From: Octopus sinensis
Taxonomy: Eukaryota
Length of the DNA stretch: 64,000 nt
Direction of reading: 5' to 3'
NCBI RefSeq assembly: GCF_006345805.1
Contig: NW_021831284.1
Span: 62,001 to 126,000 of the forward strand
Shown: in pieces, positions 1-63,495 of the stretch
Layout: every line of letters begins with the position of its first letter
Numbering within the stretch: the stretch's first letter is position 1
Made by a program: the position numbers and the translations under genes
Notes under the pieces: generated by a model
Database searches by the model: none
Told to the model about the DNA's origin: nothing
What the model saw: only the letters and a program-made list of their open reading frames with translations

Positions 1-1297
1 CAACATACACATCTTCTCATCTACTAACTGTATATGATTTCATGTGTAATCGACACAGACAAGTCCTCTTTGTGGGAAGATGTGACTTATTCTTCGGATA
101 TTTCTCTCTACGGGGACAGTAATGTTGTCTTCACTGCATCTCGAACAGCCAAGTAGAAAAATAAATAACGATGATAGATATTGGGCTGTGGCTGCAAGGA
201 ACAGTGATGAAAATATTTGCCATAGTAATTTGGGAACTCTCTATAAGCGGATCATTTCTTTAAATTATTTTGCTCGCTTTGTAGTCTACGCTTTTCGGAC
301 TTCTCCAACATTATGTCATCTCATATGTGCCTGTGTTACTGATGCAGTTCAACAATCATTTTCATTTTTCGAACACAGTGGATATCAAAATGTGATGAAT
401 TCAAATTATTTAAAAGTATATCCGATTTTTGAATTGATATTTACAGATTCCTGGATATCAATATATTTATGTGTCTGTTTCTGGTTGGGGATCTTATTCA
501 ATTAAGCAGAAGGATCTTTGCATTATTTATTTCGATCCCCTTTTTGAGAATTTGTTGGAAATGTATGTAGAATTTCCCTCAAGATTGGATGAGTCAACAT
601 CTCAAAAATCATTGATATCTTTTTACAATAACAAGTCCAGGACGTTCACTAAACAGACTATTATATATCCTGATAATATACTGGTATATTTGGTGATCAA
701 ATTTTTAGGAGTCCCCCGCCAACTCGAAACAAAACGGGCATGAATCAGAGGGTTAGTCATACTCAACAATGATTAGCTTTAGATTTTTCTGTGCCAATTC
801 AAATTCCGAGTGACAATTATTCTGAACACTCCGAGGAGCCTATTAAGACAAATCATAGTTTTCAGTCCGAGAGTGAATCAAATGAGTTACGTTCTGAAGA
901 GTGTGTACTAGAAATGTCGATCAATGTGGAGGACGATAATTTTACAAGAGGTAATTTTGTGTTTGACATGATTATAGTGGATTCCTGTGAACTTACCGAT
1001 GAGCTAAGAACACCTATTAATATAAGTGAGGAGAATCCAAGTATGGAATTACAGTCCGGTTAGTATGTTTATTCTGATGATAAAGATGATCCAGTTGTAG
1101 ATAGCTTGAATTTATCAGACTCAGGTGATGCTAATATTTCGAATCCCATTCAAACTTTGATTTATGAGACTAATATACAAATCACCAACGAAACACGTGA
1201 CGATCCAGCTGAATCAGGTTTGTGATTTATAATAATATTTTTAGTTCAAGTTGTGACACAAGAAGCAGAGGTGGAATCTAACCAAAGTAAATTTTAG
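1..1297 (+). CDS. Ankyrin-like protein, 3' part (ZU5-B + UPA domains, then acidic low-complexity tail); 5' end outside window
   Basis: Spliced translation LWEDVTYSSDISLYGDSNVVFTASRTAKYWAV...LYKRIISLNYFARFVVYAFRTSPTLCHLICACVTD...IPGYQYIYVSVSG aligns with recalled ankyrin ZU5-UPA text (QWEDITGTT..VSFTTNVSARFWL..LYRELICVPYMAKFVVFAK..LRCFCMTDD). GT-AG introns at 153-177, 416-446, 684-708, 752-776, 1059-1085, 1218-1244 join the ORF pieces; stop TAG 1295-1297. Confidence 0.8.
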
Positions 1298-3937
1298 TTT
1301 ATTTCTATGTTGTGTGTTTTGATTTCTTGATAATTTGGTCTATTTGGGGCCTATTTATCACATATCGCTTATTAATTCCCTATTTCTTAATTTTGTCCTT
1401 ATTAAAAAGCATCTAGATTATTTAGATTCATTATTCTAAATTGTTTTATTAATTAAATATTTTTTATTGGTTGATATTTATCCTATTTTAGATTTGGATT
1501 GATCTACCATCCTTACCAATTCGTTTTCTTAATCTTTAGTAATTTTAATACATTTTAAACTAAATCACTTCTTTTATTTTCGTAATTTTAAAAACTTATA
1601 TTTACAGAAATAGCTTAATATCTTAGTGACTTGATTTGTATAACTTATCCAAATATCGTCAACCTGAGATATTTCTATTTTCGTAAAAGACCTTTTCACA
1701 TAAACTTAGTGTTTGGGGAAATACTGACTATTTATATGCCCTAAGACCTCAAATAATTAGTTTTTTAATCTTGTAAAGGAATGAATTTTGTATGTCGGAG
1801 TTTTATGGGTTGGTCACAAATGAGTGTTAATAAGTCGTCGACTTTGCTAAGTGGGATATGCCACATCTCATCATTTTATGTTAGGATGATGATTATAAAA
1901 ACAGATTTAAATGTTAAAATTAAAACACTGCATACTGAAAATACTTGAAAAAAAACATTGAGTCTCAATTTCCATTACTATATGTCAGTATACTGTCCAG
2001 AAATTTCAATTAAATCTTTTATTCAGTCCGCTGTCTTTGTGAATTATAAACTACAAATTATGATCGAATGTATGAACCGATTTAAATAAACAAGATAGTG
2101 CTATGAATGTCCTCATTGCGGACCTCTTCAACGGAATGCTTAAAACAAACAACCATTTACCCCTTGGACGAGGGATACTGTTCCCTGTCCAAAAACCGAA
2201 CAAAGCTAAGAAAAATCTTTTGAATAGCATACGGGAAGTTCTTGCAATCATTACGCTAGAAAGAATAAAACCTCACACCGAACTATTTATATTCGCTTTT
2301 CACAGCGGATTTTGGAAAGGAAGATCGACTTCTGACATTGTGTAGACCAGTGGTTCTCAACCTTTTTTGTCCGCGGACCCCTTGTGAGTAAATGAAAAAT
2401 TTCGCGGACCCCCTACATATTTATTAAGTTTTTGTCAAAAAAATTTTACTTATCTAAACACAAAATTTATTATTTTATTTTTTTTTTAACACGTGATAAT
2501 CTATTGAATTCCAACAAAGTTAAACTAATGTATGTAAAGCAGAAAAACTGATGGCGATCCAGAAATTTATTATTAAATCAATAGAGAAAATTAGTGAGAA
2601 GGTTGATATTGTTTTTTTTGAGGCAACTTTTTCAATAAGAGGCTCGGTTGTCGACAAGCAAACCCTGATGTCATCTTCAATATTCAGTCTTGCGCGATGA
2701 TTATTTTTTATATTGAGAAGTGCTGAGAAGCCATGTTCGCATAAATATGTTGTCGGGAATATAAGCAACAAATTTAATGCATTTGCGCTTACGGAAGAAT
2801 AATGCTTACACATTTCGCACCAAAATCTTGATAAAGCAAGTTTTTCATACAAATCTTTTGCGTTTGAATTATTGATCATGTCAATAAAAGCCTCTTCGAC
2901 ATTTTCATCGACCAAACGTGGATCAACACTGAATGGTGTACGAATGAATTTCAAATCAACTTCGTTCAATTCTGGAAAGTATTTATTTACTTCTTGTTGA
3001 AGATATGTTAATGTGCATAAATAAGTTCGGTTATTTTTTTGATTTCAAATGCATCTATATTTACAGATTGTTCTTCAAAAGATTCAAACATAGTAAAATT
3101 ATTTAGTTTTACTTTTTCTTTCCACAGTGTTAACTTCATCAAAAAAGCACTAATAATTAATATGAAACAGTTAACAAACTTAATTTTATCCACAAAATCA
3201 ATTATTGTTTCATGTCTTCCCTGAAGCGATTTGTTGAGTGAATTTATACGAGAGAAGACATCTCTCAAGTAAGCAAGTTTAGATAGCCATGAACTATCCA
3301 TTAATTTTGGAATAAATTCCGATGATTTGGAATTGTTTTCGCGAATAAAATATTCAGATAATTCATTCCTCAAAGAAAAAACTCTGGCAAGAATGTTTCC
3401 CCTAGATAGCCATCTCACTTCAGTGTGGAATAACAAAGCCTTTCCATCCTTTTCAAATTCTTCGCAAATAAGTCTGAAAATGCGCGAATTTAAAGCACTC
3501 TTTTTAATATAATTTATGATATGTACGACATCATCGAGAACATATCTTAAATCTGAAGGTAATGTTTTTGCAGCAAGTGCATATCGATGTAGCATACAAT
3601 GCATATGTTTCGTTTCCTGGAGCAAGTCTAACTTGGCCTCTAAAGCCAGAATGAAAGCCAAGCATTGCTGGAGCTCCATCGGTTGTGCAACAACATACAT
3701 TATTCCAAGATAACCCAACACTGTCAAAAAACATAGAAATTGCTTGAAAAATATCTTCTCCTTTAGTGGTCGATTCAAGCGAATAGGAAAATAAAAATTC
3801 CTCTTTAAAATCTCCGTCATAGACATTACGAGCAAATATTATTAATTGAGCACAGTTCGCTACATCGGTGGATTCATTAACTTGTATAGCGAAATTTTGA
3901 TGGCATGCAGTTTTTATTGTTTTACCACCTGTTAAAA

Positions 3938-6349
3938 TCTTAATAATAAAATGGTATGGTGTGTGTCTGTCTGTCTGTCTGTGTGTGCACACCAACTTCA
4001 AATTGGCAATACGATGTCCTCGACTTACATGATGAGGTCCTTAAAACCTTCCCCCAAAAAAAATTAAAAAAAATTTTCTGCGTTTTGGTCAAAATGAACA
4101 ACTACGATGTCCTCGACTTACATGATGAGGTCCTTAAAACCTTCCCCCCAAAAAAAATTAAAAAAAATTTTCTGCGTTTTGGTCAAAATGAACAACTACG
4201 ATGTCCTCGACTTACATGATGAGGTCCTTAAAACCTTCCCCCCCAAAAAAATAAAAAAAAATTTTCTGCATTTTGGTTAAAATGAACAACTACGATGTCC
4301 TCGACTTACATGATGAGGTCCTTAAAACCTTCCCCCCAAAAAAATTAAAAAAAAAATTTCTGCATTTTGGTTAAAATGAAAACTACGATGTCCTCGACTT
4401 ACATGATGAGGTCCTTAAAACCTTCCCCCCCAAAAAAATTAAAAAAAATTTTCTGCATTTTGTTAAAATGAACAACTACAATGTCCTCGATTACATGATG
4501 AAGTCCTTAAAACCTTCCCCCCAAAAAAATTAAAAAAAATTTTCTGCATTTTGGTTAAAATGAACAACTACAATGTCCTCGACTTACATGATGAAGTCCT
4601 TAAAACCTTCCCCCAAAAAAATAAAAAAAAATTTTCTGCATTTTGGTTAAAATGAACAACTACAATGTCCTCGACTTACATGATGAAGTCCTTAAAACTT
4701 CCCCCCAAAAAAATTAAAAAAAAATTTCTGCATTTTGGTTAAAATAAACAACTACAATGTCCTCGACTTACATGATGAAGTCCTTAAAACCTTCCCCCCA
4801 AAAAAATAAAAAAAAATTTTCTGCATTTTGGTTAAAATGAACAACTACAATGTCCTCGACTTACATGATGAAGTCCTTAAAACCTTCCCCCCCAAAAAAA
4901 TTAAAAAAAAATTTCTGCATTTTGGTTAAAATGAACAACTACAATGTCCTCGACTTACATGATGAAGTCCTTAAAACCTTCCCCCCAAAAAAATTAAAAA
5001 AAATTTTCTGCATTTTGGTTAAAATGAACAACTACAATGTCCTCGACTTACATGATGAAGTCCTTAAAACCTCCCCCCCCAAAAAAAATTAAAAAAAATT
5101 TTCTGCATTTTGGTTAAAATGAACAACTACAATGTCCTCGACTTACATGATGAAGTCCTTAAAACCTCCCCCAAAAAATCAAAAAATTATTTTCTGCATT
5201 TTGATTAAAATGAACAACGCGAATGTCCTCGACATTCATGATGAGGTCCATTAAAACCTTCAAGGCAAAAATCTCACGTATTAAGAATATCCTTGATGAA
5301 AACGACAGCGAGAATATTAACAATGATGAACTCCCAATTATTCGCGATAAAGAAATTCAATTCATCCTATGTTTTTCTCTTTAAAATTAAATGCATATAT
5401 CATTATCGACCATGAATCAAAATTAAAGCTATTATCATATTTGACTTTGACAGAATGTGCAATCACAGATTGCACGACTTTGAATAGAGTGTGCAATTAA
5501 CAGATTTTGAAAAACCACTTTGATAGTTGAAACCACATTAGCACAATCATTAACACAATTTACCACCAATTGACGCACGACCTTGAATAGAGTGTGCAAT
5601 TAACAGATTTTGAAAAACACTTTGATAGTTGAAACCACATTAGCACAACCATTAACACAATTTACCACCAATTGACAGCGCAATCAGAAGAATTTGCGTA
5701 AAAATATTAACTATTTACTTGAGTTTTTCGTAAAGATAGAATTTATTTTCGGTATGCCTCTTTTCCTAAACTTTTTTATTATTCAAAAATAATTTTTTAA
5801 ATAGATAACCGAAGGAGGAAAAACGAAGCTGAAGAAAAACGGTCAGCTTAATAAGGTAATTAATTAAATCTTTTTTGTGTGTCGCTTTTTTGTGTGTCGC
5901 TTTCTTGCCTGCCGCATTTCCGCCTGCCGCATCTCCCCCTGCCCCATTTCCGCCAGTAAAAAACAAAAAAAGAAAAAAAAGGAAATTACAAAGGAAAAAT
6001 GAAAAAATTAAATAAAAAAAAATAAACCACAAAAAATGAAAAAAAAAGTGTGCAATGACAATAAACAAGGCCCAGGGACAGTCATTAAAGGTAGTTGGGT
6101 TATTTTTAGAGAGTGAGTGCTTTTCACATGGACAGCTGTATGTGGGATGCTCGAGGGTAGGCAGAAGAGAAAATTTATTCATATATGCCAAGGAAGGACG
6201 GACGACAAACATCGTTTATCAACAGGCGATAGAATAGGGTTACATTTAACCAGGTAGTTTTATACATCTACATAAACTTATAGTTGTTTGATGAAACAGG
6301 CCCTCCGCAGGAGCTAGGTCGCGGTGAGCGAAGCGAGCTGCCGAGCTAG
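3938..6349 (+). mobile_element. Non-autonomous Helitron, copy 1
   Basis: Starts TC after A (3938), ends CTAG before T (6349) with a subterminal GC-rich hairpin; carries Pif1 helicase C-terminus MTINKAQGQS...HGQLYVGCSRV (6055-6237); ends shared with 51798-54409. Confidence 0.92.
4011..5260. repeat. Tandem array of ~93-bp unit, ~14 copies, inside Helitron 1
   Basis: ATGTCCTCGAC recurs at ~4014, 4107, 4201, 4295, 4388, 4481, 4573, 4665, 4757, 4850, 4944, 5037, 5132, 5223; units differ mainly in C/A homopolymer lengths. Confidence 0.97.
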
Positions 6350-7599
6350 TAAATAATATAATATCAATAACCTGACACTTAATATTTTCTGACATTTCAG
6401 AAATTCGTCGATGAACAGTATCATTCGATAATGGTATTTCCGAAATCATATTTCAGCATGAGTGCCAATAAGAGTACGTACTATGTCTTTACAACAAGGA
6501 AGAATCAGTTTTTCGGCCATATTATGAGGTTTCTTTTCTTTCGCTATACGTAATGAGATCATGTAAGATGCTAATAGCATGGAATTATCAGAAGGCAAAG
6601 TTTGTATGAAACGAGTCAATACTTGATTTTTCATCATTTTAGGCAAAGAAATAAATAATCCTTATTTTTGTGGATTAGATGGGGATGACATGTGCGCAAG
6701 TGTATCACAAGAGTTGTTGGTTTCATGCTATTGTGTGACAGAATTTTCATGCACACAACACATTTTGGGCTTTCAAATCCATCTTTATCAATACAAATAA
6801 ACCCATATTTTATATAAATAATTAAGTTACATTCAGCTTTAAAGTAATTTAGCCTCCTCAGTATTATTGAATATTAAAATATATTAATTTATTTAGCCCC
6901 CTCAGTATTATTAATATTAAAATATATTAATTTATAATATATCTAAAAGAGTTATTAATTATGATTTAATTCTATTATATATTAATTTAAAATTGTTATC
7001 ATTAAATAAAAACATTTAAATAAAGTTTCAGAAAAATCTCGCGGACCCCAGGTTGAGAACCTCTGGTGTAGACCCATAAATGGCATTGTTCCACCATTCA
7101 AAGGTTCAAAAATGCGACATACATTCTTGGCATTGATATGTCAAGAGATTTTGAATCGATTAATCGTCAGAAATTAATGGAAGTCCTCGCAGGATTCCTT
7201 GATGAATCTTCTATCCGGATGATCAGGGCACTCTTATCAGAAACCTATCTATCGGTCAGGGTACGAGACAAGTGCTCTAAACCATTTGAAACAACATCTG
7301 GAACACCTCAAGGGGATCCGTTATCTCCTATACTGTTTGTCACATTTCTGGAAGTTGCATTGAGAAAACTAAAACCATACTATTAAGGAAAGATCAATGT
7401 GGTGGCATACGCGGATGACGTGGATCTTATTTCTTCCGACTGGGACGCTCTGGAAAGCCTACTGGAGGTGATGCCAAATAGACTTGCTGAGTGGTTCCTC
7501 AATGTAAATGTGGAGAAAACAGAATTTACTGAACTAGCAAAACTGAACTTAGGTTCAGAACTTACCTATATCTACAAAGGAGACTGACTTGAAAATTAA

Positions 7600-9030
7600 A
7601 AAATTAAACAACAGTAGGGCAAAATAGATGGAAAAATGAGCAAGTATGCACCAAGCGAATTGACAGCCATCATTACGAACATTTTTAATATGGTATTTGA
7701 GACACATTCACCTTTGAAACTTGGGGATGGAATTTTAATTTCTTTACGTAAACAAGGAAAGAGCAAGGGTCCGCTAAAAAATCTAAGATCAGTGATATTA
7801 CTGAAGACACTGAGAAAAATTCTATCTCTGATAACTCTTAATCGGATATCTTCTGATGTTTGCGATTTTCTGTCGCCAGGACAGAGTGGATTCAGAAGGG
7901 GTCGCTCGACTGCAGACGCTGTCTGGTCTCATAGATGGATGTGTGCTATGTGTCAACAATACAAAAATGACTTTAAAATTCTGGGAGTGGACATTTCCAG
8001 TGCGTTTGACACTGTCAATAGGAAATCGTTGTTGGACGTTATTGAGAGTTTTCATGATGAAACGGGTTGGAAACGAGTTATCAAATCCTTTTGGGACAAC
8101 AATTGGAACATTTAAGAGGTGGACTCTCTATCTCCGGTTCTATTCATAGTATACCTGGAGGCAGCACTGAGAGATCTCAGAACAAAGTGCGAAGGATCGA
8201 TGCCGATGGAAATTATATATCCAGACGACATAGACTTTGTGTCAGAAAATGATCAGGAACTTGCATCTGTTTTGAAGAAAATTCCTGACGAATTTGAGAG
8301 ATGGTGTTTGCACGTTAATCAAGAAAAGACTGAACACATAAGAATCGCAAGGGAATCGAAATATATTGATGAAAGTTGGAGGAAAAAAAGGAAATTGGGA
8401 TCATTACTTGGTGATAGTGAGGACATGATGTACCGGAGAGTTTTAGTTTTGCAATGTACAAGAAAATGCAAAAGATATGGATTTATAAAAAAAACTTCAA
8501 AAACAAACCTTAAGCTAAAGCTGTACAAAGCATATATAAAACCAGTACTCATGTACCTGGTACTTGGGGTGTCATAGAGGCAGAATTACATAAAATGGAC
8601 ACGTTTCACAGAAAACAACTACGCAATCTACTGGGTCTAGGATGGCCAAAAAAGATTCCTAACAGAAAATTATACGCTATGACACGATCGGTGCCAATAA
8701 GCATTGATATTATAGAATCAAAATGGAGGCTGTTTAGACCCGTACTTAGTATGGACGTAAACACACCAGCAAACACAATAATAGATGATAACTTTAACAA
8801 TAACAACAAAACACCGTTCAGAGGAAGGCCCAGGGTCACTCTCCCTGTTGCACTAAACAAGGAGACAACTTGGATGTGCTGACGACCCTGAAAACATACG
8901 AGTATATGCTCAAAGCAGACCCCGATGGAGACGCCTGGTGAACAAGATTTCTGAACGTGCGGTACAAACTGGACCTTAGCTAATTTAACATTTCTTTGGT
9001 TCTGTGTACGTGCTATTAATAATAATTATT
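7600..9030 (+). mobile_element. Second RTE-clade retrotransposon RT remnant
   Basis: LRSVILLKTLRKILS, QSGFRRGRSTAD, GVDISSAFDTV, DSLSPVLF, YPDD, KLYKAYIKPVL, FRGRPRVTLP across frameshifted ORFs 7636-8882; TAA-rich tail ~9010-9030. Confidence 0.85.
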
Positions 9031-9256
9031 ATTTGGTGACAATAATAGTATCAAAAACGTAAAGAGTAGTGGTATTATCTGATAAAGCCTTTCCTTAATA
9101 TGCCATTCAAAGGTAAAGAAAAATTTTAAAAATTCCAACTTTTCAATTTAGTTCTTAAAAAAACTTGGAAACGACTCCTTTCCAGGTCAGAACCAATAAA
9201 ATTATTTTCACTTGAGCGACGTATAGGCTGGACAACTCTCCGGCCAATAAATTGTA

Positions 9257-9705: not shown

Positions 9706-9707
9706 TA

Positions 9708-51797: not shown

Positions 51798-54409
51798 TCT
51801 TAATAATAAAATAGTATGGTGTGTGTCTGTCTGTCTTCTGTCTGTGTGTGCACACCAACTTCAAATTGGCAATACGATGTCCTCGACTTACATGATGAGG
51901 TCCTTAAAACCTTCCCCCCAAAAAAAATTAAAAAAAAATTTTCTGCATTTTGGTTAAAATGAACAACTACGATGTCCTCGACTTACATGATGAGGTCCAT
52001 AAAATTTTCCCCCCAAAAAAAAATTGAAAAAAAATTTTCTGCATTTTGGTTAAAATAAACAACTACGATGTCCTCGACTTACATGATGAGGTCCTTAAAA
52101 CCTTCCCCCCAAAAAAAATTAAAAAAAAATTTTCTGCATTTTGGTTAAAATGAACAACTACGATGTCCTCGACTTACATGATGAGATCCATAAAACCTTC
52201 CCCCCAAAAAAAAAATTGGAAAAAAATTTTCTGCATTTTGGTTAAAATAAACAACTACGATGTCCTCGACATTCATGATGAGGTCCATTAAAACCTTCGA
52301 GGCAAAATTTGACTTTGACAGAATGTGCAATTACAGATCGCACGACCTTGAATAGAGTGTGCAATTAACAGATTTTGAAAAACACTTTGATAGTTGAAAC
52401 CACATTAGCACAATCAATAACACAATTTACCACCAATTGACAGCGCAATCAGAAGAATTTGCGTAAAAATATTAACTATTTAGTTAAGTTTTTCGTAAAG
52501 ATAGAATTTATTTTCGGTATGCCTCTTTTCCTAAACTTTTTGGTACTTTTGTCGAAGTGGTCGCAGTTTTTTAGGCCTTTTAAAAAATCTAATAATTTTT
52601 GAGGTGGAATATATTATATTTTATTTAAGTCGCTCTATCAATAATTTAAAATATTATTAAATTTTTTACTAATTTATTTTCTAATTTTTTTAATATTATG
52701 GCGAGCATGTACCTAATATTGATATAAACTGGCACTATAGGTCACATGGAAAATTCTGTTGTGGACTTATGCAACATCAAATTCCGACAGCTCCCAATAA
52801 GTAAGGAGGTGGATATCCTTTCAAAATCACGTATATGTCCGAAGGGACATCAGATGGAATTAGTCTTGGGACCGAAGCTCAATTGGAAATGCTCAAGAGT
52901 TGGTTGTAGAGTCCAATGTTCTATTAAAAAAGGTATAATTTCTCTCAAATAATTCTAGATACCTGGTTAGAGAATTGTAGATTGCCATTTGAGGATGTCA
53001 TCGCCTACATAACTTATGGAGTTACGATAGGCATACCTTCAAATGGCTTCATCACGAATACAATTGGGGTGAACATACTAGTAATTCGATATGTCGAGGT
53101 GGAAGCATTATTTATAGTGACTGCTGGAAAGGTTAGCATTATTTGATTAACATTTAGGGTATTCAACTGATCATTGGTTGAAAACGGCTACACACACGAA
53201 ACCGTTAACCATAAGTAAGGAAATATAATATATTCAGAAAATTCTTTGTGGATCAACGACGGGAGTGCACACCCAGACAGTAGAACGAATGTGGGGAAGT
53301 GCAAAATGCAAGAATAAAGCTCAAAGAGGAGCTGTAAGACATCATCTGGGATCTTATTTCGCAGGTTTTTTTAGTTAGTTATTTTTTCAGTCGACAAAAG
53401 TACCCTTTTTATTATTCAAAAATAATTTTTTCAATAGATAACCGAAGGAGGAAAAACGAAGCTGAAGAAAAAACGGTCAGCTTAAGGTAATTAATTAAAT
53501 CTTTTTTGTGTGTCGCTTTTTTGGCTGCTGCTACTTTGCCTGCCGCATCTCCGCCTGCCCCATTTCCGCCTGCCCCATTTCCGCCTGCCCCATTTCCGCC
53601 TGCCCCATCTCCGCCTGCCCCATTTCCGCCAGTGGTTTGTCTAATCAAGGTCACTAAGCTAAATCTCCGGACTATAAAGGCTCCTAAGCATTATCTTAAT
53701 TGGCTGTTAAAAAAATTAGACAGGTTGTTGCCGTGGCGGCAGAGATTTTTTTTGTTTATACTATTTTACAAATTTTTAAAGTTTTTTATTTGTTTTTTTT
53801 ATTTTTTTTGTTATTTTCTAAAAATTCAACTGGATTGAATTTTTAAACTCCTTAGATCCCTCTGGAATGCCGAATCATCTTTTAAAGTTAAAGATAGGCG
53901 TTCCAGTGGTTTTATTACGAAATCTTGCGCCACCTAAATTATGCAACGGAACGAGGTTAGTTATCAAAAATTTGATGGCTAACGTAATAGAGGCGGCGAT
54001 ATTAACAGGTAACTATAGAGGTGAGGATGTTTATATTCCACGAATTCCGATAATTTCTGATGAATTACCATTTAGATTTAAAAGGCTGCAATTTCCTTTG
54101 AGGATGAGTTTTGCAATGACAATAAACAAGGCCAGGGACAGTCATTAAAGGTAGTTGGGTTATTTTTAGAGAGTGAGTGCTTTTCACATGGACAGCTGTA
54201 TGTGGGATGCTCGAGGGTAGGCAGAAGAGAAAATTTATTCATATATGCCAAGGAAGGACGGACGACAAACATCGTTTATCAACAGGCGATAGAATAGGGT
54301 TACATTAAACCAGGTAGTTTTATACATCTACATAAACTTATAGTTGTTTGATGAAACAGGCCCTCCGCAGGAGCTAGGTCGCGGTGAGCGAAGCGAGCTG
54401 CCGAGCTAG
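51798..54409 (+). mobile_element. Non-autonomous Helitron, copy 2
   Basis: A|TC start, hairpin + CTAG|T end; five 93-95-bp units (51874-52300); Pif1 helicase [34 protein letters not shown] (53867-54296). Confidence 0.93.
52542..53404 (+). mobile_element. Merlin element nested in Helitron 2, transposase with three micro-introns
   Basis: TIR GGTACTTTTGTCGA; absent from Helitron 1 at the same site; CPKGH..WKC, SDCWK|G, TVNH, HTQTVERMWG; introns 52933-58, 53132-57, 53215-37. Only 6 bp (CTTTTT) of flank is duplicated. Confidence 0.9.
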
Positions 54410-54667
54410 TTTAAAATATATGTTTTATTAAAGGTTGAAAAGTAATACAGCACAACCATCAAAAAAATTAGATAATATTTTATTTAATTATTAAAATTTT
54501 AATTAAACAAATAAAAAAAATTATAATTTTTATTTAAAGTTAAAAGTATCTCTGGATTCTTATTTTCCTAACTGAATAAATAGTCGAATCGAGGAGAGTA
54601 CTAATTATTTTTATTTTTTAATCAACAAATTTTTGAATAAATCAATAAATTATAATAATTGTGAATT

Positions 54668-57243
54668 ATGTTAATTCAACAGCCGGTGGTGTTTCTTGTC
54701 TCAAGTAGTCATTACTAACCAAAATTTTTAGGAATATAAAGAATTTGTGCAAGAGGAAGTGAAACCTTTGCCCAAACCAGTGATTGTGAATAAGAAGGAC
54801 CGCATAACGTTGACGGAGTTGGAAGATAAAAAAAAGAATTGGAGATAAGATTGGAAGTTGAGGCCATTAAAATAAGAGAAGAACAAAGTCAGCATTCATT
54901 GAGAGTAAAATCATGTTTTATTTGCCTTTAAGTTGATTGAGGGGAAAAATAGAATTGGTGCAAAGAAGAATCCCTCATAAATTAATGAAATAAACAAGAA
55001 AATAAATTTTTGCAAAAATTTTTCATCGAGGAGCATTTTATTTGGTTGGATTATATAATTGGTTGGTTCTCAACCTTTATTTTTGTATCGCCCTTTTGGA
55101 ATTTTTTTCGCTCCTCCAATTTTTATATCGCCCCCTTATTTCATTAGTAAAAATTTTATTTAAAAAATAAGAGTTTTAATGAGATCCTTGTGGCTGATGA
55201 AGATTGACAAGTTTTTCAAAATTTGTACTTCTTTTCGTAAGTGTAATTCTAATGTCGCCTCTTTCTTCTATATTTAGTTTGTTTCTTTTTTTTCCGATCA
55301 TACCATTCAGAGTGCTGAATCCTCTCTCTACGCAGTATGACGTAGGAAAACCTAATATTATTGGCATCATTTTTTCCCATAATTTCGGGAATTTCATTTT
55401 TATAGATTTTTCTCCCCAGAATTGTGTCAGGTTTTCATTTTTAAATTTTATTTTCAGTTCTTCGTCGTTTTTTAGTTCTATTAATTCTTCTTGACATTCA
55501 TCATCAGAATCATAATGAATGGGCAACCAAGGATTAATCATCCAATCAGAAAAGTTTAAATTAATTAAATCTTCAAATCTTTTTTTCAAATCTTGTTCCA
55601 AAGATTCTAAATGAAATTCATAAATTTTCAGATCGTTGTCATCAAAAGTGTGGTCATAAAAATCGAATTTTCCAAATTTTCTATTACTTAAATTAAATTT
55701 GTAAAATTGAATTTTTTCAATGAATGTATTTATAATTCGTTTGCAATTAATTAAATTAACATAATCTCCTTTTTTGCAATTAAATGATGCCGATGTAAAA
55801 TACAATGAATTGAAGTGGACATTGGAGATTTTTGTTTTAGATAAGCTAAAAAAACCACGATATTTTCCAACCATAGCCATTGCGCCATCTGTTACGCACG
55901 ATAAAATATGTTCAAATGGAATATTATTTAAGAATAAATAAGATTCAAACATTTTGAATATTGACAATCCTGTAGTATCCGTGACTAAAGATTTTGCAAA
56001 TAATAACTCTTCTTGCAAAATAAAATCATCATCGAAATATCTTTATAAAAAGTATTTATAAAAAGTAATACCTTACATATGCCATCAAAATTGACTGATT
56101 ATCAACGACAACTGATTCGTCAAGTTGGACTGAAAACTTGCGTTCTCTGAGAAATAAAATTAAAGATTGTTCAATTTCATTAGAAATTTCATCAATTCTT
56201 CTTCGTATAGTGTCGTTGCTTAATGGAATAGTCTTCATAATATTTGAAGAATCTTTTTGTAAGATATCGTTTATAAATAAATTTAAACAAGGACGGATGA
56301 CATTTTCTGCAATCGAATGGGCATTACCTATAAATTAAAATAATAATGCAACTAGTTTTTGCGATTATCTCTGCAACTTTATATGAATAAGATAATCCAG
56401 AGACATTTTGAGATATATTTTTATTAAAGATTGACGGTAAGGTGTTTTTATTTTCAAAATTCTTTTTTAATTCTAGAAAAAAGTCTGGCTTTTTTCCAAT
56501 TGAATTATGATGTTTTCGCTTTAAATGTTCAATCAAACCAGACGGTTTCATTGCCTCATTCGAAAAAATTGTACCACATTGAAGACAAAGTGGTTTATTA
56601 GGATCTTGAGGATCTTTAATAAATCCAAGAGAAATATATTCATCTTTATACATTCTGACTTTTTTTTGAACACGATCCATAAAGATAACTAGAAATCACG
56701 CTTAGAAATTTAAATAAAATATAATACAAATATCATGTTATTAGACTCGATTATATATCTTTATTTTTTCAAAGATTATTGACTTCTAACATAAGATTTT
56801 AATTTTTCAAATATTAGCAATCAGCCATCGCCCCTCTGGCAGAAAAAATCGCCCCTAGGGGGCGAATCGCCCGCCGTTGAGAACCACTGATATAATTCAT
56901 TTAATGTAGGATGAAGAACAAGATGTTTCAAAACGTGACTTTAATCAGTCAACATTGGAAGACCATTTTGACAAATCAAGACTACCTTGTGTTATGCTGG
57001 TTAGTCTTTAAAAATGCCATTTTTTTATTTCTACAAATATAAATTAAGATGAAAAATTTTTGGATGGCTGGAAGGATAAAATATACTCATTTGGTGCATA
57101 AGGATACAACTATCTTTAATAATTTTCCATGGAAGACGAATCTCAGGGTGGGGTCAGACCCGTCGGAGAAATTGGAGGAATTCGTGATCTTCTTTGTACG
57201 CCCTCCGGAAAAACGGAAATACATGACGTTTGATCGTCCTTGA
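54668..57243 (+). pseudogene. MFAP1: MFAP1 (spliceosomal B-complex protein) homolog, degenerate
   Basis: STAGGV; PKPVIVNKKDRITL; HRGAFYL|DEEQDVSKRDFNQSTLEDHFDKSRLPCVML|MKNFWMAGRIKYTHLVHKDTT. Frameshifts, a stop and missing internal segments. Confidence 0.8.
55061..56889 (-). mobile_element. hAT element, internally deleted, inside an MFAP1 intron
   Basis: Right TIR GTTGAGAACCACTG, left GGTTGGTTCTCAAC (3 terminal mismatches); TSD ATATAATT (55053-60, 56890-97); BED finger PLCLQC..HLKRKH, FSVQLDES, VTDGA, FPTSYCVERGFS. Confidence 0.93.
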
Positions 57244-57489
57244 GTAATTTAAAAAATTTGTCATGATTATTTTTTAAAATGTAAATATTTGTATAATGAA
57301 TTGACGATAACTATTTGTTAGTAGAAGGTCTTTAATTTAATTCTAAAATATAAAGATAACACATTATTATGAAAAAATTGATAAATTTTTAATGTTGTTA
57401 AATGCCTTGCTCATACACCCCTCTACATTAAAATCCGAATACTTAATTTTTAGCAAATTTTTAATGATAATTTTTCGTATTAATATACA

Positions 57490-58250
57490 TTACATTCACT
57501 CGAACAGAGCAGCCTTTTAGATTTTTTTGGTAATTTCAGCCATGTTTAGTCACGAATCAATAGTATTTTTAAAAATCAGTGCATAAAACGAGTATCCCCA
57601 GTATTCCAAAGATTATTAAAATTAAGAATCTTCCTTGCTGCCTGATAATGCTTTTAGAGCATCGAGATCCTCAACCACTTTGCAGTTTTTTGTTTATTGC
57701 AGCTAAATCTTTGTTTAATTCGGTAGGTATTGTGTCTTGGGTTTTTCACAAAATGGGACAAATTAGTTTTCCATCGCAATGTTCCGAGGAGTGAGACTAC
57801 CCAGTCTTAACATTGGCCAAAAAATCGCCATCTGGAATTCAGGATTTCTGTAGAGATCGACTCGAATTACATCGTTTGTATAAGACTGAATTTGATATTT
57901 TTCTTAGGAATTGCATTTTTATAATTTTTTGATAAAATTGGTTCAAACTGTTCATTTCATATTTGGTGATTTCCCATATCGATCCGTTATACGTCAGGAC
58001 CGAGACAACTAACGTGTTATTGTCTTTGTATTTAGCTTTCTTAGACGACAGCTGTTTACGAGTTTATTGTACGCCACATTTGATAGTATCTTACTATGAG
58101 TCACCAGCAGTAATCCAACTTTTTATGCCTTCTCCAGAGTTTATCATAGGTCCGTTTAGCACGAACAATTTTTGTGCATTCCGTGGAATACAATGCCAGA
58201 CAAAAAATTAGATTCGTTATAAATTTTACTTTTTTCTTTGAAAAATTATA
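57490..58250 (-). mobile_element. Highly decayed RTE-like remnant
   Basis: TLVVSVLTYNGSIWEITKYEMNSLNQFYQKIIK resembles the RTE C-terminal motif; many stops. Confidence 0.35.
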
Positions 58251-58269
58251 AACATTTACGACATTTTAG

Positions 58270-60635
58270 CTAGTGAATTACAACTATGTACATCCCACCT
58301 CCCGGCTCTTGTCCAAGGAGCTATTGCCTCCCTACTCTCTCCAATCTTGCACGGATAGACGGGGTCATCTTATGCGGTGACCTCAATGCAAAACACCCCC
58401 TTTGGCTCTCTAATCAGTTGGCGGATACAAGAGGGAAATCTCTAATTTCCCAATTGGATTCCTTAACCATCCTGAACGACCCTTCGAGAAACACAAGAAC
58501 CTCTTTCAGAGGGACCAACAAACCTACGTCACCCGATGTTACTTTATGCTCTCCTTCTCTGGCATCATCTACGGAGTGGTCAGTCTTCTATGAAACGAGA
58601 AGCGACCACAACCCGATAACGGTTAAGATCAAAAGAGAAGTTGTCACCAGGAAAGTTCCAATTCCATACAATTACAAAGCGGCCAACTGGCCACGGTTCC
58701 AAGAGATATTGAACACGAGACTAAAAAATTGCAATCTGTGCAACTTTAGCTCTCTCGACAAGGCCTTCGGCTTCTTCTCGAAGATCATCCTGGAAGCAAG
58801 AGCAATGGCTATTCCTAAACGCCCACCTCACGCTGCTTGTAGTCGAAGGATATCCGGTCTAGCCAAGGAGAGAAATCGCCTCAAAAGGTCAAACCGGATG
58901 TCTTCTGACATAATTACCCGCATCCGACACTTAAACAAGGAATTGAAGTCCAATGAACTCAGACACACCTATTTGAAATGGAACCGCATTCTTTCTACCG
59001 TGAACCGCAATCGTTCAACGGGTAAAGTGTGGAAAGCCATTCGGCACGTGGCCAGGGGGGGACGCTCCCGAACCTTTCGAAGATTTTGATAAAAAAGACG
59101 TGAACAACCTCATGAATTTCTATGCGAAAAATGCACATAAAGATCACAGGAAATCCGACTCACTCCCCTCCAACAGAAGCCTAAAAAACGGGTTGAACCG
59201 CTCCTCCTCTCGGTAAAGGAGGTGGAAGATACCTTGCACTCAACAAAACCTTCTTATTCTTACGGCCCCGACAAAATCCCTGTGATCCTTTTAAAAAACC
59301 TTGGCGTCGAAGGTGTCAGATTCCTAACAGCAATCTTCAACCATTCTATCAACAACAACGTAATTCCGGCATTATGGAAACAAGCCTTAATAAGGCCGAT
59401 ACTGAAGCCTGGAAGACCAAGAGGGGACCCGGCTTCTTTCAGGCCGATTTCCCTGTTATGCTTGATGTCAAAAATCCTGGAAAGACTGGTTCTTGGCAGA
59501 ATAGAAGCTTTCTTACCCGAAAGACATTTTCAACATGGTTTTAAGAATGCGAAGTCCACGTCTTCGTACCTCCAATCCTTGTCTAACTTCATCTGTACCG
59601 GTTTTGCCAGCAAACCGAGGCACCAAAAGACAGTGCTCTGCTCCGTCGACATCCATAAAGCCTTCGATTCCGTCTCGAGGAAGCTCCTCTCAAGGAAGAT
59701 ATTCCAATCCGACTTTCCTCTGAAGCTAAAAATATGGATTACCAACTTCCTAAGTGGACGAAGGGGAAGGGTGTGCCTCGGTGGTCTGAAGTCCAAATCT
59801 CGTCTTCTACCCAACGGAGTACCTCAGGGATCCCCCTTATCCCCGGCCCTCTTCAACCTATTTTTGGAAGACCTCCCTCGCTCCCTCGACAACAATGACA
59901 TTGTTCTCTCATACGCGGACGACATCGTACTAGCCTCATGGGACCGGGACATCCAGAAGGCCTCGGAAAGGCTCCAAGCTAACTTGGATCGGCTAAACCT
60001 ATGGCTGACGGACAACCGGCTCGTGGTAAACGCGGCGAAGTCCGCCACGTCCCTCTTCACCTCGGATAAAAGATTGGGAAGGACGTCAGTCGACTTAAAG
60101 CTGAATAATTTATCCGTTCCCTTCTGCATGAGTCAGACGGTCCTAGGGGTAACCCTCGACATGCAACTCTGTTTCTCCCCACATGTGGACAACCTCCTTC
60201 GCAAATGCAAACAAAAACTGCAAATTCTACGAACCCTATCTGGAATTTGGAAAAACGGGTCGCACCCGGTACTGGCGAATATCTACCGCCAGTACTTCGA
60301 ACCTTGTGTTGCGTACGCTTGCGGATCATGAGGTCCGCGGCTATCGTGGTCCAACAGGAGGCGAATCGAGGAGGCCCAACAAAGGGCCCTCAGATTAACC
60401 GATCGTTGGTCACATGATAGCCAACGCCCCGGTCCAGCCTCTCTGGAAGACCTCATCAAGCTGAACCTGGGCCCGTCAGCGACTGCTCCGCCAAAAACGG
60501 CCTGCCGCCCTGTACGATCTTGTGTGGGCTCGTGGAAAGACCACCGAGCGAGGATGAGGTCCCTGGTTGAGTGCATCGGGATCACGTGACGTTTGTTCGG
60601 TTTTTAGCGTGGTCTTGGTGATTTAATAAATAAAT
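58270..60635 (+). mobile_element. I/Jockey-like LINE (APE endonuclease + RT), 5'-truncated
   Basis: GDLNAKHPLW, SPDVT, SDHNP (58286-59089); RPISLL, QHGF, DIHKAFDSV, GVPQGSPLSP, YADD (59222-60331); TAAA tail. Confidence 0.95.
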
Positions 60636-60639
60636 AACT

Positions 60640-60960
60640 GATTCACAAGGCTAAGGTGAAGATTGTGCCAATTGTTATTACGTGGGATGGAATCGTCTCA
60701 ACGTTCTACCGCAAGTACATGGAGCTCCTTGGGATTGAAGAACGTGTTCGGTCTTACATCCAGACTGTAACGCTGAAGGCCACTCTGGAGAGCATGTTTG
60801 TTGAGTACAAACATGGCTTCAGTGAAATCCTGGACTCTGCAAATTTCGTAAATAGGAACTAACGGAAATATAATTTCTCTATGAAGATCAGCAAGTCCCT
60901 TAAGACATCCAGAGATTGCGCGCCCCAGGAGGAGATTGAAGATCATGGCGAGGACGATCA
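60640..60960 (+). mobile_element. R2/NeSL-like C-terminal fragment
   Basis: KIVPIVITWDGIV..YIQTVTLKATLESM. Confidence 0.8.
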
Positions 60961-61003
60961 ATGTGGAGTCATGGGGAACTCAGAAAGGAAAAATGTATAT
61001 AAA

Positions 61004-61075
61004 GCCTCTATAGCTCAGAGGTAGAGCATTGGTCTTGTAAACCAAGGGTCGGGGGTTCGATTCCCTCTGGGGGCT
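61004..61075 (+). tRNA. tRNA-Thr(UGU)
   Basis: Acceptor GCCTCTA/TGGGGGC, D arm AGCTCAGAGGTAGAGC, anticodon stem TTGGT-CTTGTAA-ACCAA, T loop GGTTCGATTCC. Confidence 0.95.
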
Positions 61076-61229
61076 TAATTTTATAAAAATATATGTCAAA
61101 ATTTTTGATAGTTGTTTCTTCCACAAGATCCTATATTAAAAAAACCTGGTAAACATTTTTCCTTCTAACTAGTTTTTTAAACGCAAGTGGTTCAAATATA
61201 TTCTCTGAACAAAATATAATAAGCTGTCA

Positions 61230-61480
61230 ATCCTGGGCACGTTACGAGGCCCCTCAAGGATCGTAAGATTCTCAAGTACGGCCACCTCTCGAATTCCCTC
61301 CTATTCACAATATTTGCTTTTGAGTCTTCAGGGATCTTCAGCTCCAAGACGATTTACTTCCTTCGCTCCTTCGGCTGACGGATATCAAGAGTAAGACAGG
61401 CTCTAAAAACGTCTGTCGATCCCCGGGATTCGTGGAAATGGCTTTGCTATTTGGAGACTAGCCGAGCGTCTCGTGAGACA
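61230..61480 (+). mobile_element. CRE 3' fragment
   Basis: Collinear with 34050-34325 (FTIFAFESSGIFSSKTIYFLRSFG). Confidence 0.7.
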
Positions 61481-61928
61481 TTAGTTAAATTAATTAAAAT
61501 AGATAAAATGCAAATAATAATGTCAAAAACTTTACGAAGGAATTCAAATATTGATAAAACACGCTTGTGATCATTTTTAGGATCATTGAAAAAGCAAAAA
61601 CATTTTTTTAAATATTTAATGATTTTTTTAAGTTTTTGAATTTATTAATAAAGAAAGGACAAGAGAAAAATCGTCATTGGCAGATAGCCAGAGTATTGCT
61701 GATTTTGACTATGGCTAATTTTTTGATGTTTTACACAAAAAGTTAATTTTTTGATAAAATTTATAAAATATATATGAAAATAACTAAATTAATAATGAAT
61801 AGTTTTAGTTTTTTTTTATTTATGTAAACCAAAAGAGAAATAGTCATTGGCAGATAGCCAGAGTATTGCCTCTGACTATTGCTATAGATATTCTTTCGAT
61901 TTCGATTAATTAATAATTCAAAATTTAA

Positions 61929-63495
61929 ATGTCTATGTGGGGTCTAACAAACTATGACATGTTTCTTCCATTAATCTGTACAATACAAATTTGTGAATTT
62001 GCATGGAATATATATTTAAATAACAGACAAGTTAAACATAGATAACTATTATTATAGTATAAAGTATACAAAACATACACAAAAATTCGAGCTGAACACA
62101 GTAATCTTGTTTCAGACAGCGTTTTCGAAAAATCTCGACTTTATAAACTTGATAAAAGCAAATTCGGATTTACAATGTCAATATTTGATATTTTTTTAAT
62201 CTTTGTTTTATTAATTTATATAATTATTAAAGCTTTCGATTGCTACGCAAATTTACAAAACCGTTTGGATTATTTCCAGCAATATCAATTCTAATCAAGT
62301 TTTTTTTGCGAATAAAATGTTTTAGTATGTCGCAACAATCATTTTTTTTGACAATCTTACCTTGTCTACGTACACTAATTTTCGTTCCCTTTTCTTACTA
62401 TTCTGACTTTTTAATAGAAGCTAGACATGGTTTCAACAAACAAGTATTTTATCACTATTATAATTTTTATTAGACAGTGACGTTTTTTATTAAAGACAAA
62501 ATAAAAAAATTGTTGTTGATTTTATTTTTCGGGATTTTTATTGGGGTGGTTACACTCTTTATAATAAATAAAACTGGAGAATCATTTGCGAATTATTTAA
62601 CACAATTCGTTTTTATTGTCAATTTAGTGAGTCATTTTGAATTATGTTTAGTTTATTTTTTTATATATATGGAGAGTTTATAGCTCCTTTATTTGATACT
62701 TTTCGTGAATTGCCACAGTCAGAGTTGCGTACAAGAATTGAAGATTTGGCCTCTTCTTTGAACTTTCCCCTTCATAGACTTTTTGTGGTTGAAGGTAATT
62801 TTTTATTATTTTATTTTTTAGGATCCAAAAGATCATCTCACAGTAATGCTTATGTGACTGGATTTTATAAAAAGAAGAAAATTATTTTATACGATACTCT
62901 TATTGGAGCCGATAATTCGGAAAATGTAAAATTTAGTTTTTATAAATATTTTAGAATGAAAAAACTATCCAAGACGAATCTTCTCAATCAGGCGAAAGAA
63001 TGACCAATGATGAGATTGTGGCAATTCTAGCCCACGAATTAGGTCATTGGAAAAACTGGGACGTTTTTAAAATATTTGCCCTTCTTCAAGTATCTTTTTT
63101 TCATTAGTTAGATTCAACTTTTCATTACATTCAAAACATGTGGATATTTTTTGTATAACTCTAAATTCTACAATGCCTTTGGGTTTGGAACTGTGAATGT
63201 TCCAGAAATGCCTCCGTTGATTGGACTTGTCTTAATTGTTTACCTTATTTTACCACTTCAAGAACTATTGAATATATTAATGGTCACTGCGACTAGATAT
63301 AACGAGTTTGGAGCTGACAGATTTTCTACAATGATTGGATATGGGGATTACTTACAATCTGCATTAAAAAAATTGTATCGAAATAATTTGTCGTTTATTT
63401 ACGATGATTGGTTATATGCCAAATTGAAATATACACATCCACCATTGATTGAGAGACTCGATGCAATAATCAATGATTCCAAAAAGATTTCTTAG
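61929..63495 (+). CDS. ZMPSTE24: CAAX prenyl protease 1 (STE24/ZMPSTE24)
   Basis: RQ|YKVYK, FEKSRLYKLDKS, IEARHGFNKQ, IAPLFD, GSKRSSHSNAY, AILAHELGHW, EFGADRF, YTHPPLIERL; introns 22-31 nt; two apparent +1 T-run frameshifts (~62342-49, ~62656-62). Confidence 0.93.

Follow-up and report, generated by a model that had tools for sequence, protein, structure and literature searches.

Genes and introns in the window

The DNA analysed here, a stretch of 64 kb that we refer to as the window, has a GC content of ~34%, carries several LINE reverse-transcriptase open reading frames (ORFs) and is densely populated with ORFs of LINEs and other transposons. It also holds six genes, homologous to CSK, STE24, SORD, DNAJB12, CPSF6 and HRI, which we confirmed to be split by uniformly tiny and densely spaced introns (Table 1). 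For five of these genes we used a homologue-guided protein-to-genome spliced aligner that was permitted to place GT-AG introns of 15-1000 nt, while the introns of DNAJB12 were modelled manually and checked against Pfam. This gave a set of 37 introns (CSK 8, SORD 8, STE24 8, DNAJB12 7, HRI 4 solid and CPSF6 RRM 2), all 22-34 nt long (median 26, mean 25.9, SD 2.5), with a GC content of 24.6% versus 37.5% for the exons, whose mean length is 132 nt. All except one (SORD 34801-34834, 34 nt if GT-AG) are ≤30 nt. A preliminary description of this DNA had proposed genome-wide micro-introns at high density, a scope that 64 kb is too short to show; micro-introns do lie at the coordinates it gave, and their density amounts to 7-8 introns per ~1 kb of coding sequence. 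Since GT-AG ends are imposed by the aligner, their presence in 37 of 37 introns is partly built in.

Table 1 Genes and introns placed in the window, in window coordinates
Feature	Position	Strand	Details
Ankyrin-like gene, 3' part (UPA domain)	86-1297	+	cut by window start; micro-introns from open frames only
DNAJB12/14-like gene	12951-14059	+	303 aa, 7 introns (24, 23, 26, 27, 25, 26, 28 nt)
DNAJB12 intron 1	13087-13110	+	24 nt, in frame, no stop; tentative
DNAJB12 intron 2	13178-13200	+	23 nt
DNAJB12 intron 3	13347-13372	+	26 nt, within J domain
DNAJB12 intron 4	13463-13489	+	27 nt
DNAJB12 intron 5	13538-13562	+	25 nt
DNAJB12 intron 6	13744-13769	+	26 nt
DNAJB12 intron 7	13922-13949	+	28 nt, within DUF1977
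CSK tyrosine-kinase gene	27796-29296	+	435 aa, 8 introns, 1.5-kb span; spliced alignments
CSK intron 1	27907-27930	+	24 nt, phase 0, in frame, no stop
CSK intron 2	28032-28055	+	24 nt, phase 2, in frame, no stop
CSK intron 3	28276-28299	+	24 nt
CSK intron 4	28463-28486	+	24 nt
CSK intron 5	28587-28609	+	23 nt
CSK intron 6	28769-28793	+	25 nt
CSK intron 7	28894-28918	+	25 nt
CSK intron 8	29015-29038	+	24 nt
CPSF6/7-like gene	30602-31603	-	RRM exons verified; remainder modelled from open frames only
CPSF6 intron	31457-31482	-	26 nt; CAGCAG tandem acceptor, 23 nt also possible; spliced alignment
CPSF6 intron	31329-31352	-	24 nt; spliced alignment
Sorbitol-dehydrogenase-like (SORD) gene	34508-35754	+	341-344 aa, 8 introns
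SORD intron 1	34553-34578	+	26 nt
SORD intron 2	34613-34635	+	23 nt
SORD intron 3	34801-34834	+	34 nt if GT-AG; doubtful
SORD intron 4	34986-35013	+	28 nt
SORD intron 5	35133-35161	+	29 nt
SORD intron 6	35228-35256	+	29 nt
SORD intron 7	35436-35461	+	26 nt
SORD intron 8	35578-35603	+	26 nt
HRI (EIF2AK1)-like kinase gene	39560-41500	-	spliced alignments with 12 homologues; C-lobe introns solid, N-terminus and kinase insert tentative
HRI intron	40173-40194	-	22 nt; 10/12 homologues
HRI intron	40057-40084	-	28 nt; 9/12 homologues
HRI intron	39945-39967	-	23 nt; 10/12 homologues
HRI intron	39781-39806	-	26 nt; 10/12 homologues
STE24/CAAX prenyl protease gene	61929-63495	+	8 introns
STE24 intron 1	62031-62057	+	27 nt
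STE24 intron 2	62205-62232	+	28 nt; placed from L001 copy
STE24 intron 3	62299-62325	+	27 nt (L001: 26 nt)
STE24 intron 4	62444-62473	+	30 nt
STE24 intron 5	62627-62651	+	25 nt
STE24 intron 6	62795-62821	+	27 nt, in frame, no stop
STE24 intron 7	62926-62954	+	29 nt (L001: 27 nt)
STE24 intron 8	63090-63111	+	22 nt (L001: 21 nt)

Once spliced, the products match Pfam domains from end to end and align without gaps to human proteins of solved structure. Of the eight CSK junctions, seven are gap-free in the alignment to human CSK (1k9a, E=1.5e-102), and the gap lies at the one intron, found eighth, that was still retained in that query; the SH2 and PK_Tyr_Ser-Thr domains are full-length. The intron found eighth, CSK intron 2 (28032-28055), had been missed by the preliminary description, whose seven CSK introns (24, 24, 24, 23, 25, 25 and 24 nt) were each recovered with most of six homologues; it was picked with five of six homologues, its place corresponds to that of the oyster intron in phase 2 of aa 84, and its excision drops an 8-residue insertion relative to 10 homologues. 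The introns of SORD, placed with the human and sheep proteins as guides for spliced alignment, leave a product that matches human SORD (1pl6, E=3.1e-65), with full-length ADH_N and ADH_zinc_N domains. Here the sole 34-nt intron of the set may really be a 25-nt GT..TG intron (34801-34825), which keeps the conserved GDR residues and raises the ADH_N score to 87.0 bits, versus 68.2 bits for the 34-nt version. The DNAJB12-like model is open from ATG to stop after intron removal and matches DnaJ (1-63/63) and DUF1977 (10-108/108), and the CPSF6-like RRM aligns to that of human CPSF6 (3q2s, E=8.7e-30) without gaps. The best named matches of the HRI-like gene are EIF2AK1-like proteins, and its middle part, around 40312-40356, admits alternative in-frame solutions of 15-45 nt. 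The window copy of STE24 needs two +1 frame corrections, both in T-runs; a clean, near-identical copy of 450 aa lies on a second contig, L001. The NCBI models of both STE24 copies are truncated.

The ankyrin-like gene had likewise been described as split by micro-introns. Its identity is borne out, if weakly, by its UPA domain (Pfam UPA_2, E=4.3e-7; ankyrin-2 structure 4d8o, E=1.6e-6), while its candidate introns of 31, 19, 25, 27 and 23 nt come from a chain of open frames only.

Intron positions and the removal of introns

That open frames can be linked by short GT..AG pairs is in itself no evidence for introns, because many chains of a comparable kind, with GT..AG links of 18-45 nt, also arise when the sequence is reversed. 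On this basis the introns could be chance pairs picked to link open frames, an artefact of reconstruction. However, homology-guided placement with free choice of length arrived at the same junctions with several independent homologues, and 15 of 16 introns tested coincide in both aligned residue and phase with introns of normal size (221-4091 nt) in oyster CSK or limpet STE24. In CSK this holds for all eight, whose oyster counterparts are 293-4091 nt long, and we estimate the probability of a random site matching one of the 10 oyster CSK positions at p ~0.008. In STE24, seven of eight match the residue and phase of Lottia STE24 introns, and the remaining one falls within 2 residues, in a gappy region. 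The coincidence of positions and phases thus marks them as shrunken orthologous spliceosomal introns rather than chance GT..AG pairs, and we regard intron position as the decisive evidence on this point. We consider an origin by chance pairing vanishingly improbable. For all 37 introns of the set it is refuted, and it stays relevant to candidates drawn from open frames only, namely those in the ankyrin-like gene, at the N-terminus of HRI and in the orphan ORFs.

Since 25 of the 37 introns have lengths not divisible by three and an in-frame stop occurs in 9 of the other 12, retention of any of these 34 would break the reading frame; for three in-frame, stop-free introns the support is homology alone. 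Those three, along with the frame breaks in the window copy of STE24, might suggest segments that are excised from the DNA itself, as internal eliminated sequences are, or retained in pseudogenes or insertion-tolerant genes. We judge this very improbable, given that 15 of 16 segments sit exactly at ancestral spliceosomal positions and phases, that all have GT..AG ends, that retention of any of 34 would destroy otherwise intact and conserved frames, and that Dicyema introns of similar size were identified by setting genomic DNA against cDNA (PMC2222250). We infer that the introns of the window are removed from RNA.

Origin of the DNA

Although the record is deposited and RefSeq-annotated as Octopus sinensis, and positions 50719-64000 of the window (13.3 kb) are 100% identical to contig VCDQ01000570.1 of O. 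sinensis assembly GCA_006345805.1, the genes it carries are not octopus orthologues. Genuine O. sinensis CSK lies on a 174-Mb chromosome scaffold, where it extends over 154 kb, and shares at least 90% identity with other octopod CSKs, whereas the CSK of the window spans 1.5 kb and is ~41% identical to the octopod cluster. We give hardly any credence to the reading of the contig as true octopus DNA, for example horizontally acquired or from an unusual genomic compartment, since the octopus has its own chromosomal CSK, the window proteins are only ~40% identical to every mollusc orthologue among the CSK and STE24 matches, and the record that holds the window is a separate one of 854 kb outside the chromosome scaffold. 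The entry filed under O. sinensis is probably parasite contamination, which the preliminary description had not recognized.

On the strength of its micro-introns, its LINE-rich and AT-rich DNA and its host, and by comparison with published descriptions, the window almost certainly derives from a dicyemid, a group that the preliminary description had named among known cases. Dicyema introns measure 26.2 +/- 1.9 nt, occupy conserved positions and were verified against cDNA (Aruga et al. 2007, PMC2222250); genome-wide descriptions date from 2019 (Lu et al., PMC6736024; Zverkov et al., PMC6543705), the published median for Dicyema sp. is 27 nt, and Ogino et al. 2010, as cited in PMC6543705, also deals with Dicyema micro-introns. 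The genome of D. japonicum, whose host is O. sinensis, has 6.2 introns per gene, 36.7% GC and 49% repeats with a LINE expansion. The window resembles these descriptions in intron length (25.9 +/- 2.5 nt, against 26.2 +/- 1.9 nt and published medians of 26-27 nt), in its dense introns at ancestral positions, in its highly divergent proteins, in its AT-rich and LINE-rich DNA and in its host; it differs in being filed under the host's name, and its species may be D. japonicum or another O. sinensis dicyemid. The phenomenon itself is therefore already known, with dicyemid introns of this size in print since 2007, and to call such introns rare in animals, as had been done for this DNA, understates a literature that drew on cDNA from 2007 and on whole genomes from 2019.

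A contig from another animal with genuine micro-introns, either a myxozoan or an undescribed octopus-associated metazoan, is in our estimation unlikely. The myxobolids Henneguya salminicola, Thelohanellus kitauei and Myxobolus rasmusseni have median introns of 22-27 nt and equally reduced splice signals (PMC13644364), and four exact look-ups of ORFs in databases returned no match, and thus no direct match to a dicyemid; nor did the protein database searched hold a near-identical, transcript-derived protein for CSK or STE24. The micro-intron myxozoans surveyed are, however, all myxobolids, cnidarians that parasitize fish and annelids (the life cycle of myxosporeans alternates between annelids and fish or other vertebrates), whereas the record comes from O. 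sinensis, the published host of D. japonicum. Myxobolids are moreover described as having relatively few transposable elements, in contrast to the crowded window, the GC content of H. salminicola is 29%, and no myxozoan protein appears among the best 120 matches for CSK or STE24.

Other systems with tiny introns are more distant. Ciliate introns, of 20-35 nt in Paramecium and 15-16 nt in Stentor, likewise form a narrow, AT-rich class below 35 nt, presumably spliced by intron definition. The proteins of the window are nevertheless metazoan in type (a CSK-type SH2 tyrosine kinase, an ankyrin UPA domain) and use the standard genetic code, its introns are orthologous to animal introns, and multiples of three are not depleted among them (12 of 37, with about a third expected). 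The orthonectid Intoshia linei is also a reduced spiralian parasite with short introns at similar density, but its median is 57 nt and most of its introns exceed 30 nt, unlike all but one in the window.

Splice signals and a possible mode of splicing

The preliminary description had reported neither room for a polypyrimidine tract nor an obvious branch consensus. The latter holds, in that none of YTNAY, YTRAY and TAAY is enriched in 25 catalogued introns relative to shuffled introns; weak signals nevertheless exist at the 3' end (n=37), where position -3 is a pyrimidine in 33 of the 37, positions -4 to -6 form a brief T-rich, A-depleted run, and A is enriched at -8 to -11. A 2026 survey found the same 3' pattern in Dicyema japonicum and myxobolids (Hadjez et al. 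2026, PMC13644364). In 36 of 37 introns, any AG inside the intron ends within 19 nt of the GT. This pattern, in which the acceptor is the first AG to occur ~20 nt or more beyond the GT, and the one possible GT..TG intron are noted here for the window, and we did not find either stated in the dicyemid literature cited here.

Taken with the probable parasite origin of the deposited contig, these features very likely reflect U2-type introns that have shrunk within intron-rich dicyemid genes. Ordinary U2-type GT-AG spliceosomal introns would have contracted to ~26 nt without losing their ancestral positions or phases, and, because the introns are ~26 nt and the exons ~130 nt long, the two splice sites would probably be paired across the intron (intron definition). 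The 5' site may consist of little more than GT(A), and the 3' site seems to be whichever AG comes first at a distance of ~20 nt or more downstream of the GT, presumably preceded by the pyrimidine at -3 and a U-rich stretch of 3-4 nt, with the A-rich zone at -8 to -11 as a candidate location for the branch adenosine. The length-constrained, intron-definition spliceosome suggested earlier for this DNA would be compatible with both the narrow length range and the first-AG pattern.

Placement of micro-introns in six genes

Since an open-frame dynamic programme strings together long 'genes' rich in short 'introns' from the reversed sequence just as it does from the real strands, the joining of exons through short GT..AG segments is uninformative by itself, and we rejected it as proof of splicing. 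The open-frame chain finder (introns of 15-200 or 18-45 nt) was retained for drafting queries only, and a codon-usage dynamic-programming gene finder was dropped because its output was dominated by GC-rich transposons and codon bias differed too little from background. Introns were placed with a spliced aligner that fits homologous proteins to genomic DNA, scores with BLOSUM62, handles split codons and permits GT-AG introns from 15 to at least 1000 nt. The preliminary description had claimed introns of 22-34 nt in every reconstructed gene and, although free to range over 15-1000 nt, the aligner still placed 37 introns at 22-34 nt (median 26 nt, mean 25.9 ± 2.5 nt) across CSK, STE24, SORD, DNAJB12, CPSF6 and HRI (EIF2AK1). 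Their removal leaves a single open frame colinear with the homologous proteins, and the retention of any one of 34 of the 37 gives a frameshift or a stop; the remaining three, in frame and free of stops, are placed by homology alone. Micro-introns in the window are thus confirmed, far beyond chance. They are poorer in GC than the exons around them (24.6% versus 37.5%), the mean exon measures 132 nt, and there are 7-8 introns per gene. Because of the reversed-sequence control, introns proposed for the ankyrin-like, UPA-domain gene at the start of the window, the N-terminus of HRI and the orphan ORFs, where the support comes from open frames only, remain candidates.

For CSK, spliced alignments were made with six homologues (molluscan, echinoderm, sponge and Capsaspora), most of which recovered the seven introns of 23-25 nt described previously. 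The total of seven was too low: five of the six homologues added an eighth intron at 28032-28055, which had been overlooked because it is in frame and stop-free. With the seven introns removed, the protein aligns with human CSK (1k9a) over residues 7-438 (E=1.5e-102) with gap-free junctions, and excision of 28032-28055 as well removes eight inserted residues that ten homologues lack.

SORD, aligned to the human and sheep proteins, has eight introns of 23-34 nt, the sole length outlier being the 34-nt intron at 34801-34834, which excises the family-conserved GDR of 'KPGDRVAIEP'. A 25-nt alternative with GT..TG ends (34801-34825) keeps these residues and scores 87.0 bits against ADH_N, compared with 68.2 bits for the 34-nt form, which suggests either a non-canonical 3' acceptor or a wrong base in the assembly. 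STE24 likewise has eight introns by spliced alignment, and two (26 and 24 nt) were placed in the RRM of CPSF6 by alignment to that of human CPSF6. In the conserved C-lobe of HRI, the agreement of twelve EIF2AK1-like homologues fixes four introns (22, 28, 23 and 26 nt); in its divergent N-terminus and kinase insert the homologue alignments disagree and spurious long 'introns' arise, and the stretch around 40312-40356 admits several in-frame alternatives of 15-45 nt. DNAJB12 was modelled by hand: seven introns of 23-28 nt interrupt a frame of 303 aa, open from ATG to stop, whose product has complete DnaJ and DUF1977 matches in Pfam; the DUF1977 exon as a lone query returned five weak matches of no use for spliced alignment. 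One database protein of 128 aa that matches DUF1977 (P0373) reads as a genomic ORF running across a short in-frame intron, and is probably from another short-intron organism.

Splice signals and 3' site choice

All 37 introns carry GT...AG ends, a count to be read in the light of the aligner having permitted GT-AG only and of the SORD intron at 34801 fitting better as GT..TG. The GT is followed by A in 19 of the 37, and a pyrimidine precedes the AG in 33. Across the set, positions -4 to -6 are T-rich and depleted in A, and positions -8 to -11 are A-rich, while the branch motifs YTNAY, YTRAY and TAAY show no enrichment over shuffled introns. The earlier proposal that these introns lack both a branch consensus and a pyrimidine tract therefore holds in part: no branch motif is enriched, but a short T-rich run and a pyrimidine at -3 do exist. 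A 2026 survey (PMC13644364) reports for Dicyema japonicum logos with 'GTa' and 'AG', a few weakly conserved A positions and a pyrimidine tract that is missing or very short, a pattern with which the window introns agree.

Internal AGs all end at most 19 nt from the GT in 36 of the 37 introns, the exception being a CAGCAG tandem acceptor. In this small sample the pattern is suggestive of use of the first AG to lie past a minimum distance of about 20 nt. Short-intron organisms are expected to pair splice sites across the intron, and at the lengths seen in the window (introns about 26 nt, exons about 130 nt) its splice sites would be paired in this way. The 3' site may depend chiefly on distance, being the first usable site at about 20-30 nt from the GT, rather than on a branch site and pyrimidine tract; in that case a TG acceptor could be tolerable, as in SORD intron 3. 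As hints on recognition, the intron set offers a candidate first-AG rule, a short run of U and, possibly, a TG acceptor. Rfam and ARAGORN scans for snRNAs in the 64-kb window gave a single tRNA-Thr and nothing else.

Ancestral intron positions and the origin of the DNA

The oyster (Crassostrea virginica) CSK locus, in which we mapped ten introns of 293-4091 nt, and the STE24 locus of the limpet Lottia gigantea served as references for intron position. All eight CSK introns of the window, including the in-frame 28032-28055, lie at the aligned residue and phase of oyster introns; seven of the eight STE24 introns match Lottia exactly, and the eighth is off by no more than two residues, where the alignment has many gaps. 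Since a random site would match with a probability that we estimate at about 0.008 (ten positions in about 1300), this positional agreement cannot be chance, and the window introns are ancestral animal introns that have been shortened some 10- to 150-fold.

The contig is filed as octopus, and the draft STE24 protein has two standout matches, both named 'CAAX prenyl protease 1 homolog [Octopus sinensis]' (79% and 86% identity), against about 40% identity with every other animal; the genes for the two are on VCDQ01012064.1 (72 kb) and VCDQ01000570.1 (854 kb). The octopus CSK, however, is a different gene: XP_029633372.1 and its isoforms share at least 90% identity with CSK of O. bimaculoides, O. 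vulgaris and Argonauta, and are encoded on a 174-Mb scaffold over a span of 154 kb, whereas the window CSK is 41% identical to this cluster and spans 1.5 kb. That identity and that difference in span do not fit an Octopus sinensis nuclear gene and, because the octopus has a distinct CSK of its own, the contig is foreign to it. Window positions 50719-64000 are 100% identical to positions 1-13282 of the sequence retrieved from an 854,231-bp contig (VCDQ01000570.1, GCA_006345805.1), which places the window in this contig, probably at positions 62,001-126,000; a second contig of 72 kb (VCDQ01012064.1) carries related sequence.

Animal introns shorter than 30 nt have been reported only in dicyemids and in myxobolid myxozoans (PMC13644364), so that intron length by itself would admit a myxobolid source. 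No myxozoan protein occurs among the best 120 matches of the window CSK or STE24, though, and the octopus record and the density of transposable elements in the window also speak against such a source, myxozoan genomes being described as transposon-poor and the window being far richer. Dicyemids inhabit the renal sacs of octopuses, and D. japonicum, sequenced from O. sinensis, has a genome of 36.7% GC, with 49% repeats, a LINE expansion and 6.2 introns per gene. Comparison with cDNA established that introns of Dicyema genes are absent from the mRNA, measure 26.2 ± 1.9 nt and occupy conserved positions (PMC2222250), a length matched by the 25.9 ± 2.5 nt of the window; the median intron of Dicyema sp. 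is 27 nt. Intron-rich genes with short exons, an AT-rich and LINE-bearing genome, and a cephalopod host are traits common to dicyemids and the window. Exact-product look-ups with four ORFs of the window, aimed at its source or a dicyemid read set, gave no match. From these likenesses we infer that the window DNA is very probably of dicyemid origin.

The micro-intron phenomenon is already known for dicyemids, whose introns, with those of the myxobolid myxozoans, are the shortest on record in animals, and the values for the window agree almost exactly with those published. What is new, and of practical use, is that parasite DNA has probably been deposited, and in part annotated, under the octopus name: in a reference assembly that is much used for octopus, one contig of 854 kb or more appears to be of parasite origin, and among the papers searched none reports dicyemid sequence in the Octopus sinensis assembly. 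To judge from the 854-kb and 72-kb contigs, the assembly and the NCBI protein set may contain a large part of an unreported dicyemid genome, with truncated models labelled octopus. The joint reading, that 3' sites are set mainly by distance and that the assembly also holds so large a part of such a genome, we consider unlikely.

Annotated models and the surrounding sequence

Introns of 22-30 nt defeat standard gene finders, and those that are in frame and stop-free are undetectable without homology or RNA. At least two NCBI Octopus sinensis proteins appear to be truncated parasite models. XP_036354668.1 (window 60719-63495) has 295 aa, compared with 450 aa for the full protein from VCDQ01012064.1; aligned to the window, it begins in a transposon ORF (60719-60847) fused to STE24 exons, contains two true micro-introns (30 and 26 nt), bridges its other gaps with 'introns' of 1210, 149 and 468 nt, and skips the exon encoding the catalytic, zinc-binding HELGH motif. 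XP_029655489.1 (positions 10001-12856 of the STE24 locus from VCDQ01012064.1), with 312 aa versus 450 aa, skips the HELGH exon too. Mislabelled entries of this kind are a risk to analyses of orthology, gene families and horizontal transfer.

The two STE24 copies are 98% identical, their flanks only 91-92%. Relative to the clean copy on VCDQ01012064.1, the frame of the window copy is broken in two T-runs, near 62335-62342 and 62654-62660, each needing a +1 correction; these breaks may be either homopolymer assembly errors or the marks of a decaying duplicate. Indels between the copies are mostly intronic and all lie in homopolymer runs; since they may be assembly errors, we set them aside as evidence.

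The window, with a GC content of about 0.34 overall (0.27-0.45 per 2 kb), has genes of short exons interspersed with transposon ORFs that lack introns. Pfam confirms LINE reverse transcriptase and endonuclease, and hAT-like and helicase fragments are present. RVT_1 and endonuclease domains were confirmed for two of the LINE-type copies, which are higher in GC than the genes.

Features of the window, with positions in window coordinates
Feature	Position	Strand	Remarks
LINE-type copy	7072-8879	+	Long intron-less ORF
LINE-type copy	25656-27584	-	Long intron-less ORF
LINE-type copy	31797-32402	+	Long intron-less ORF
LINE-type copy	36035-39256	-	Long intron-less ORF
LINE-type copy	58286-60331	+	Long intron-less ORF
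Satellite array	4010-5261		93-95 bp unit, 13.5 copies; 92-94% matches over the two arrays
Satellite array	51873-52298		93-95 bp unit, 4.4 copies
Direct duplication, ~3.0 kb	~20800-23300 and ~23800-26300
PIF1/Helitron helicase C-terminus-like fragment	6040-6234
PIF1/Helitron helicase C-terminus-like fragment	53822-54294
15-bp GC-rich tandem repeat GCCTGCCCCATTTCC	5880-5960		Adjoins helicase fragment
15-bp GC-rich tandem repeat GCCTGCCCCATTTCC	53538-53630		Adjoins helicase fragment
CPSF6 intron	31457-31482	-	CAGCAG end, a tandem NAGNAG-type acceptor; 23 or 26 nt, one-residue difference
Orphan ORF, single exon	41946-42500	-	184 aa
tRNA-Thr (anticodon TGT)	61003-61076	+	Rfam 70 bits; ~850 bp upstream of STE24 start

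The single-exon orphan ORF, for which Pfam gave no match, has an N/Y-rich N-terminus derived from a 27-nt tandem repeat (42375-42484). Within the direct duplication, ORFs 3011 nt apart have identical translations, among them 21515-21781 with 24526-24792. The satellite is common to both contigs, its array on VCDQ01012064.1 lying at about 3080-4410 of the extracted locus, and the pairing of a helicase fragment with the GCCTGCCCCATTTCC repeat, seen twice in the window, recurs there as well.
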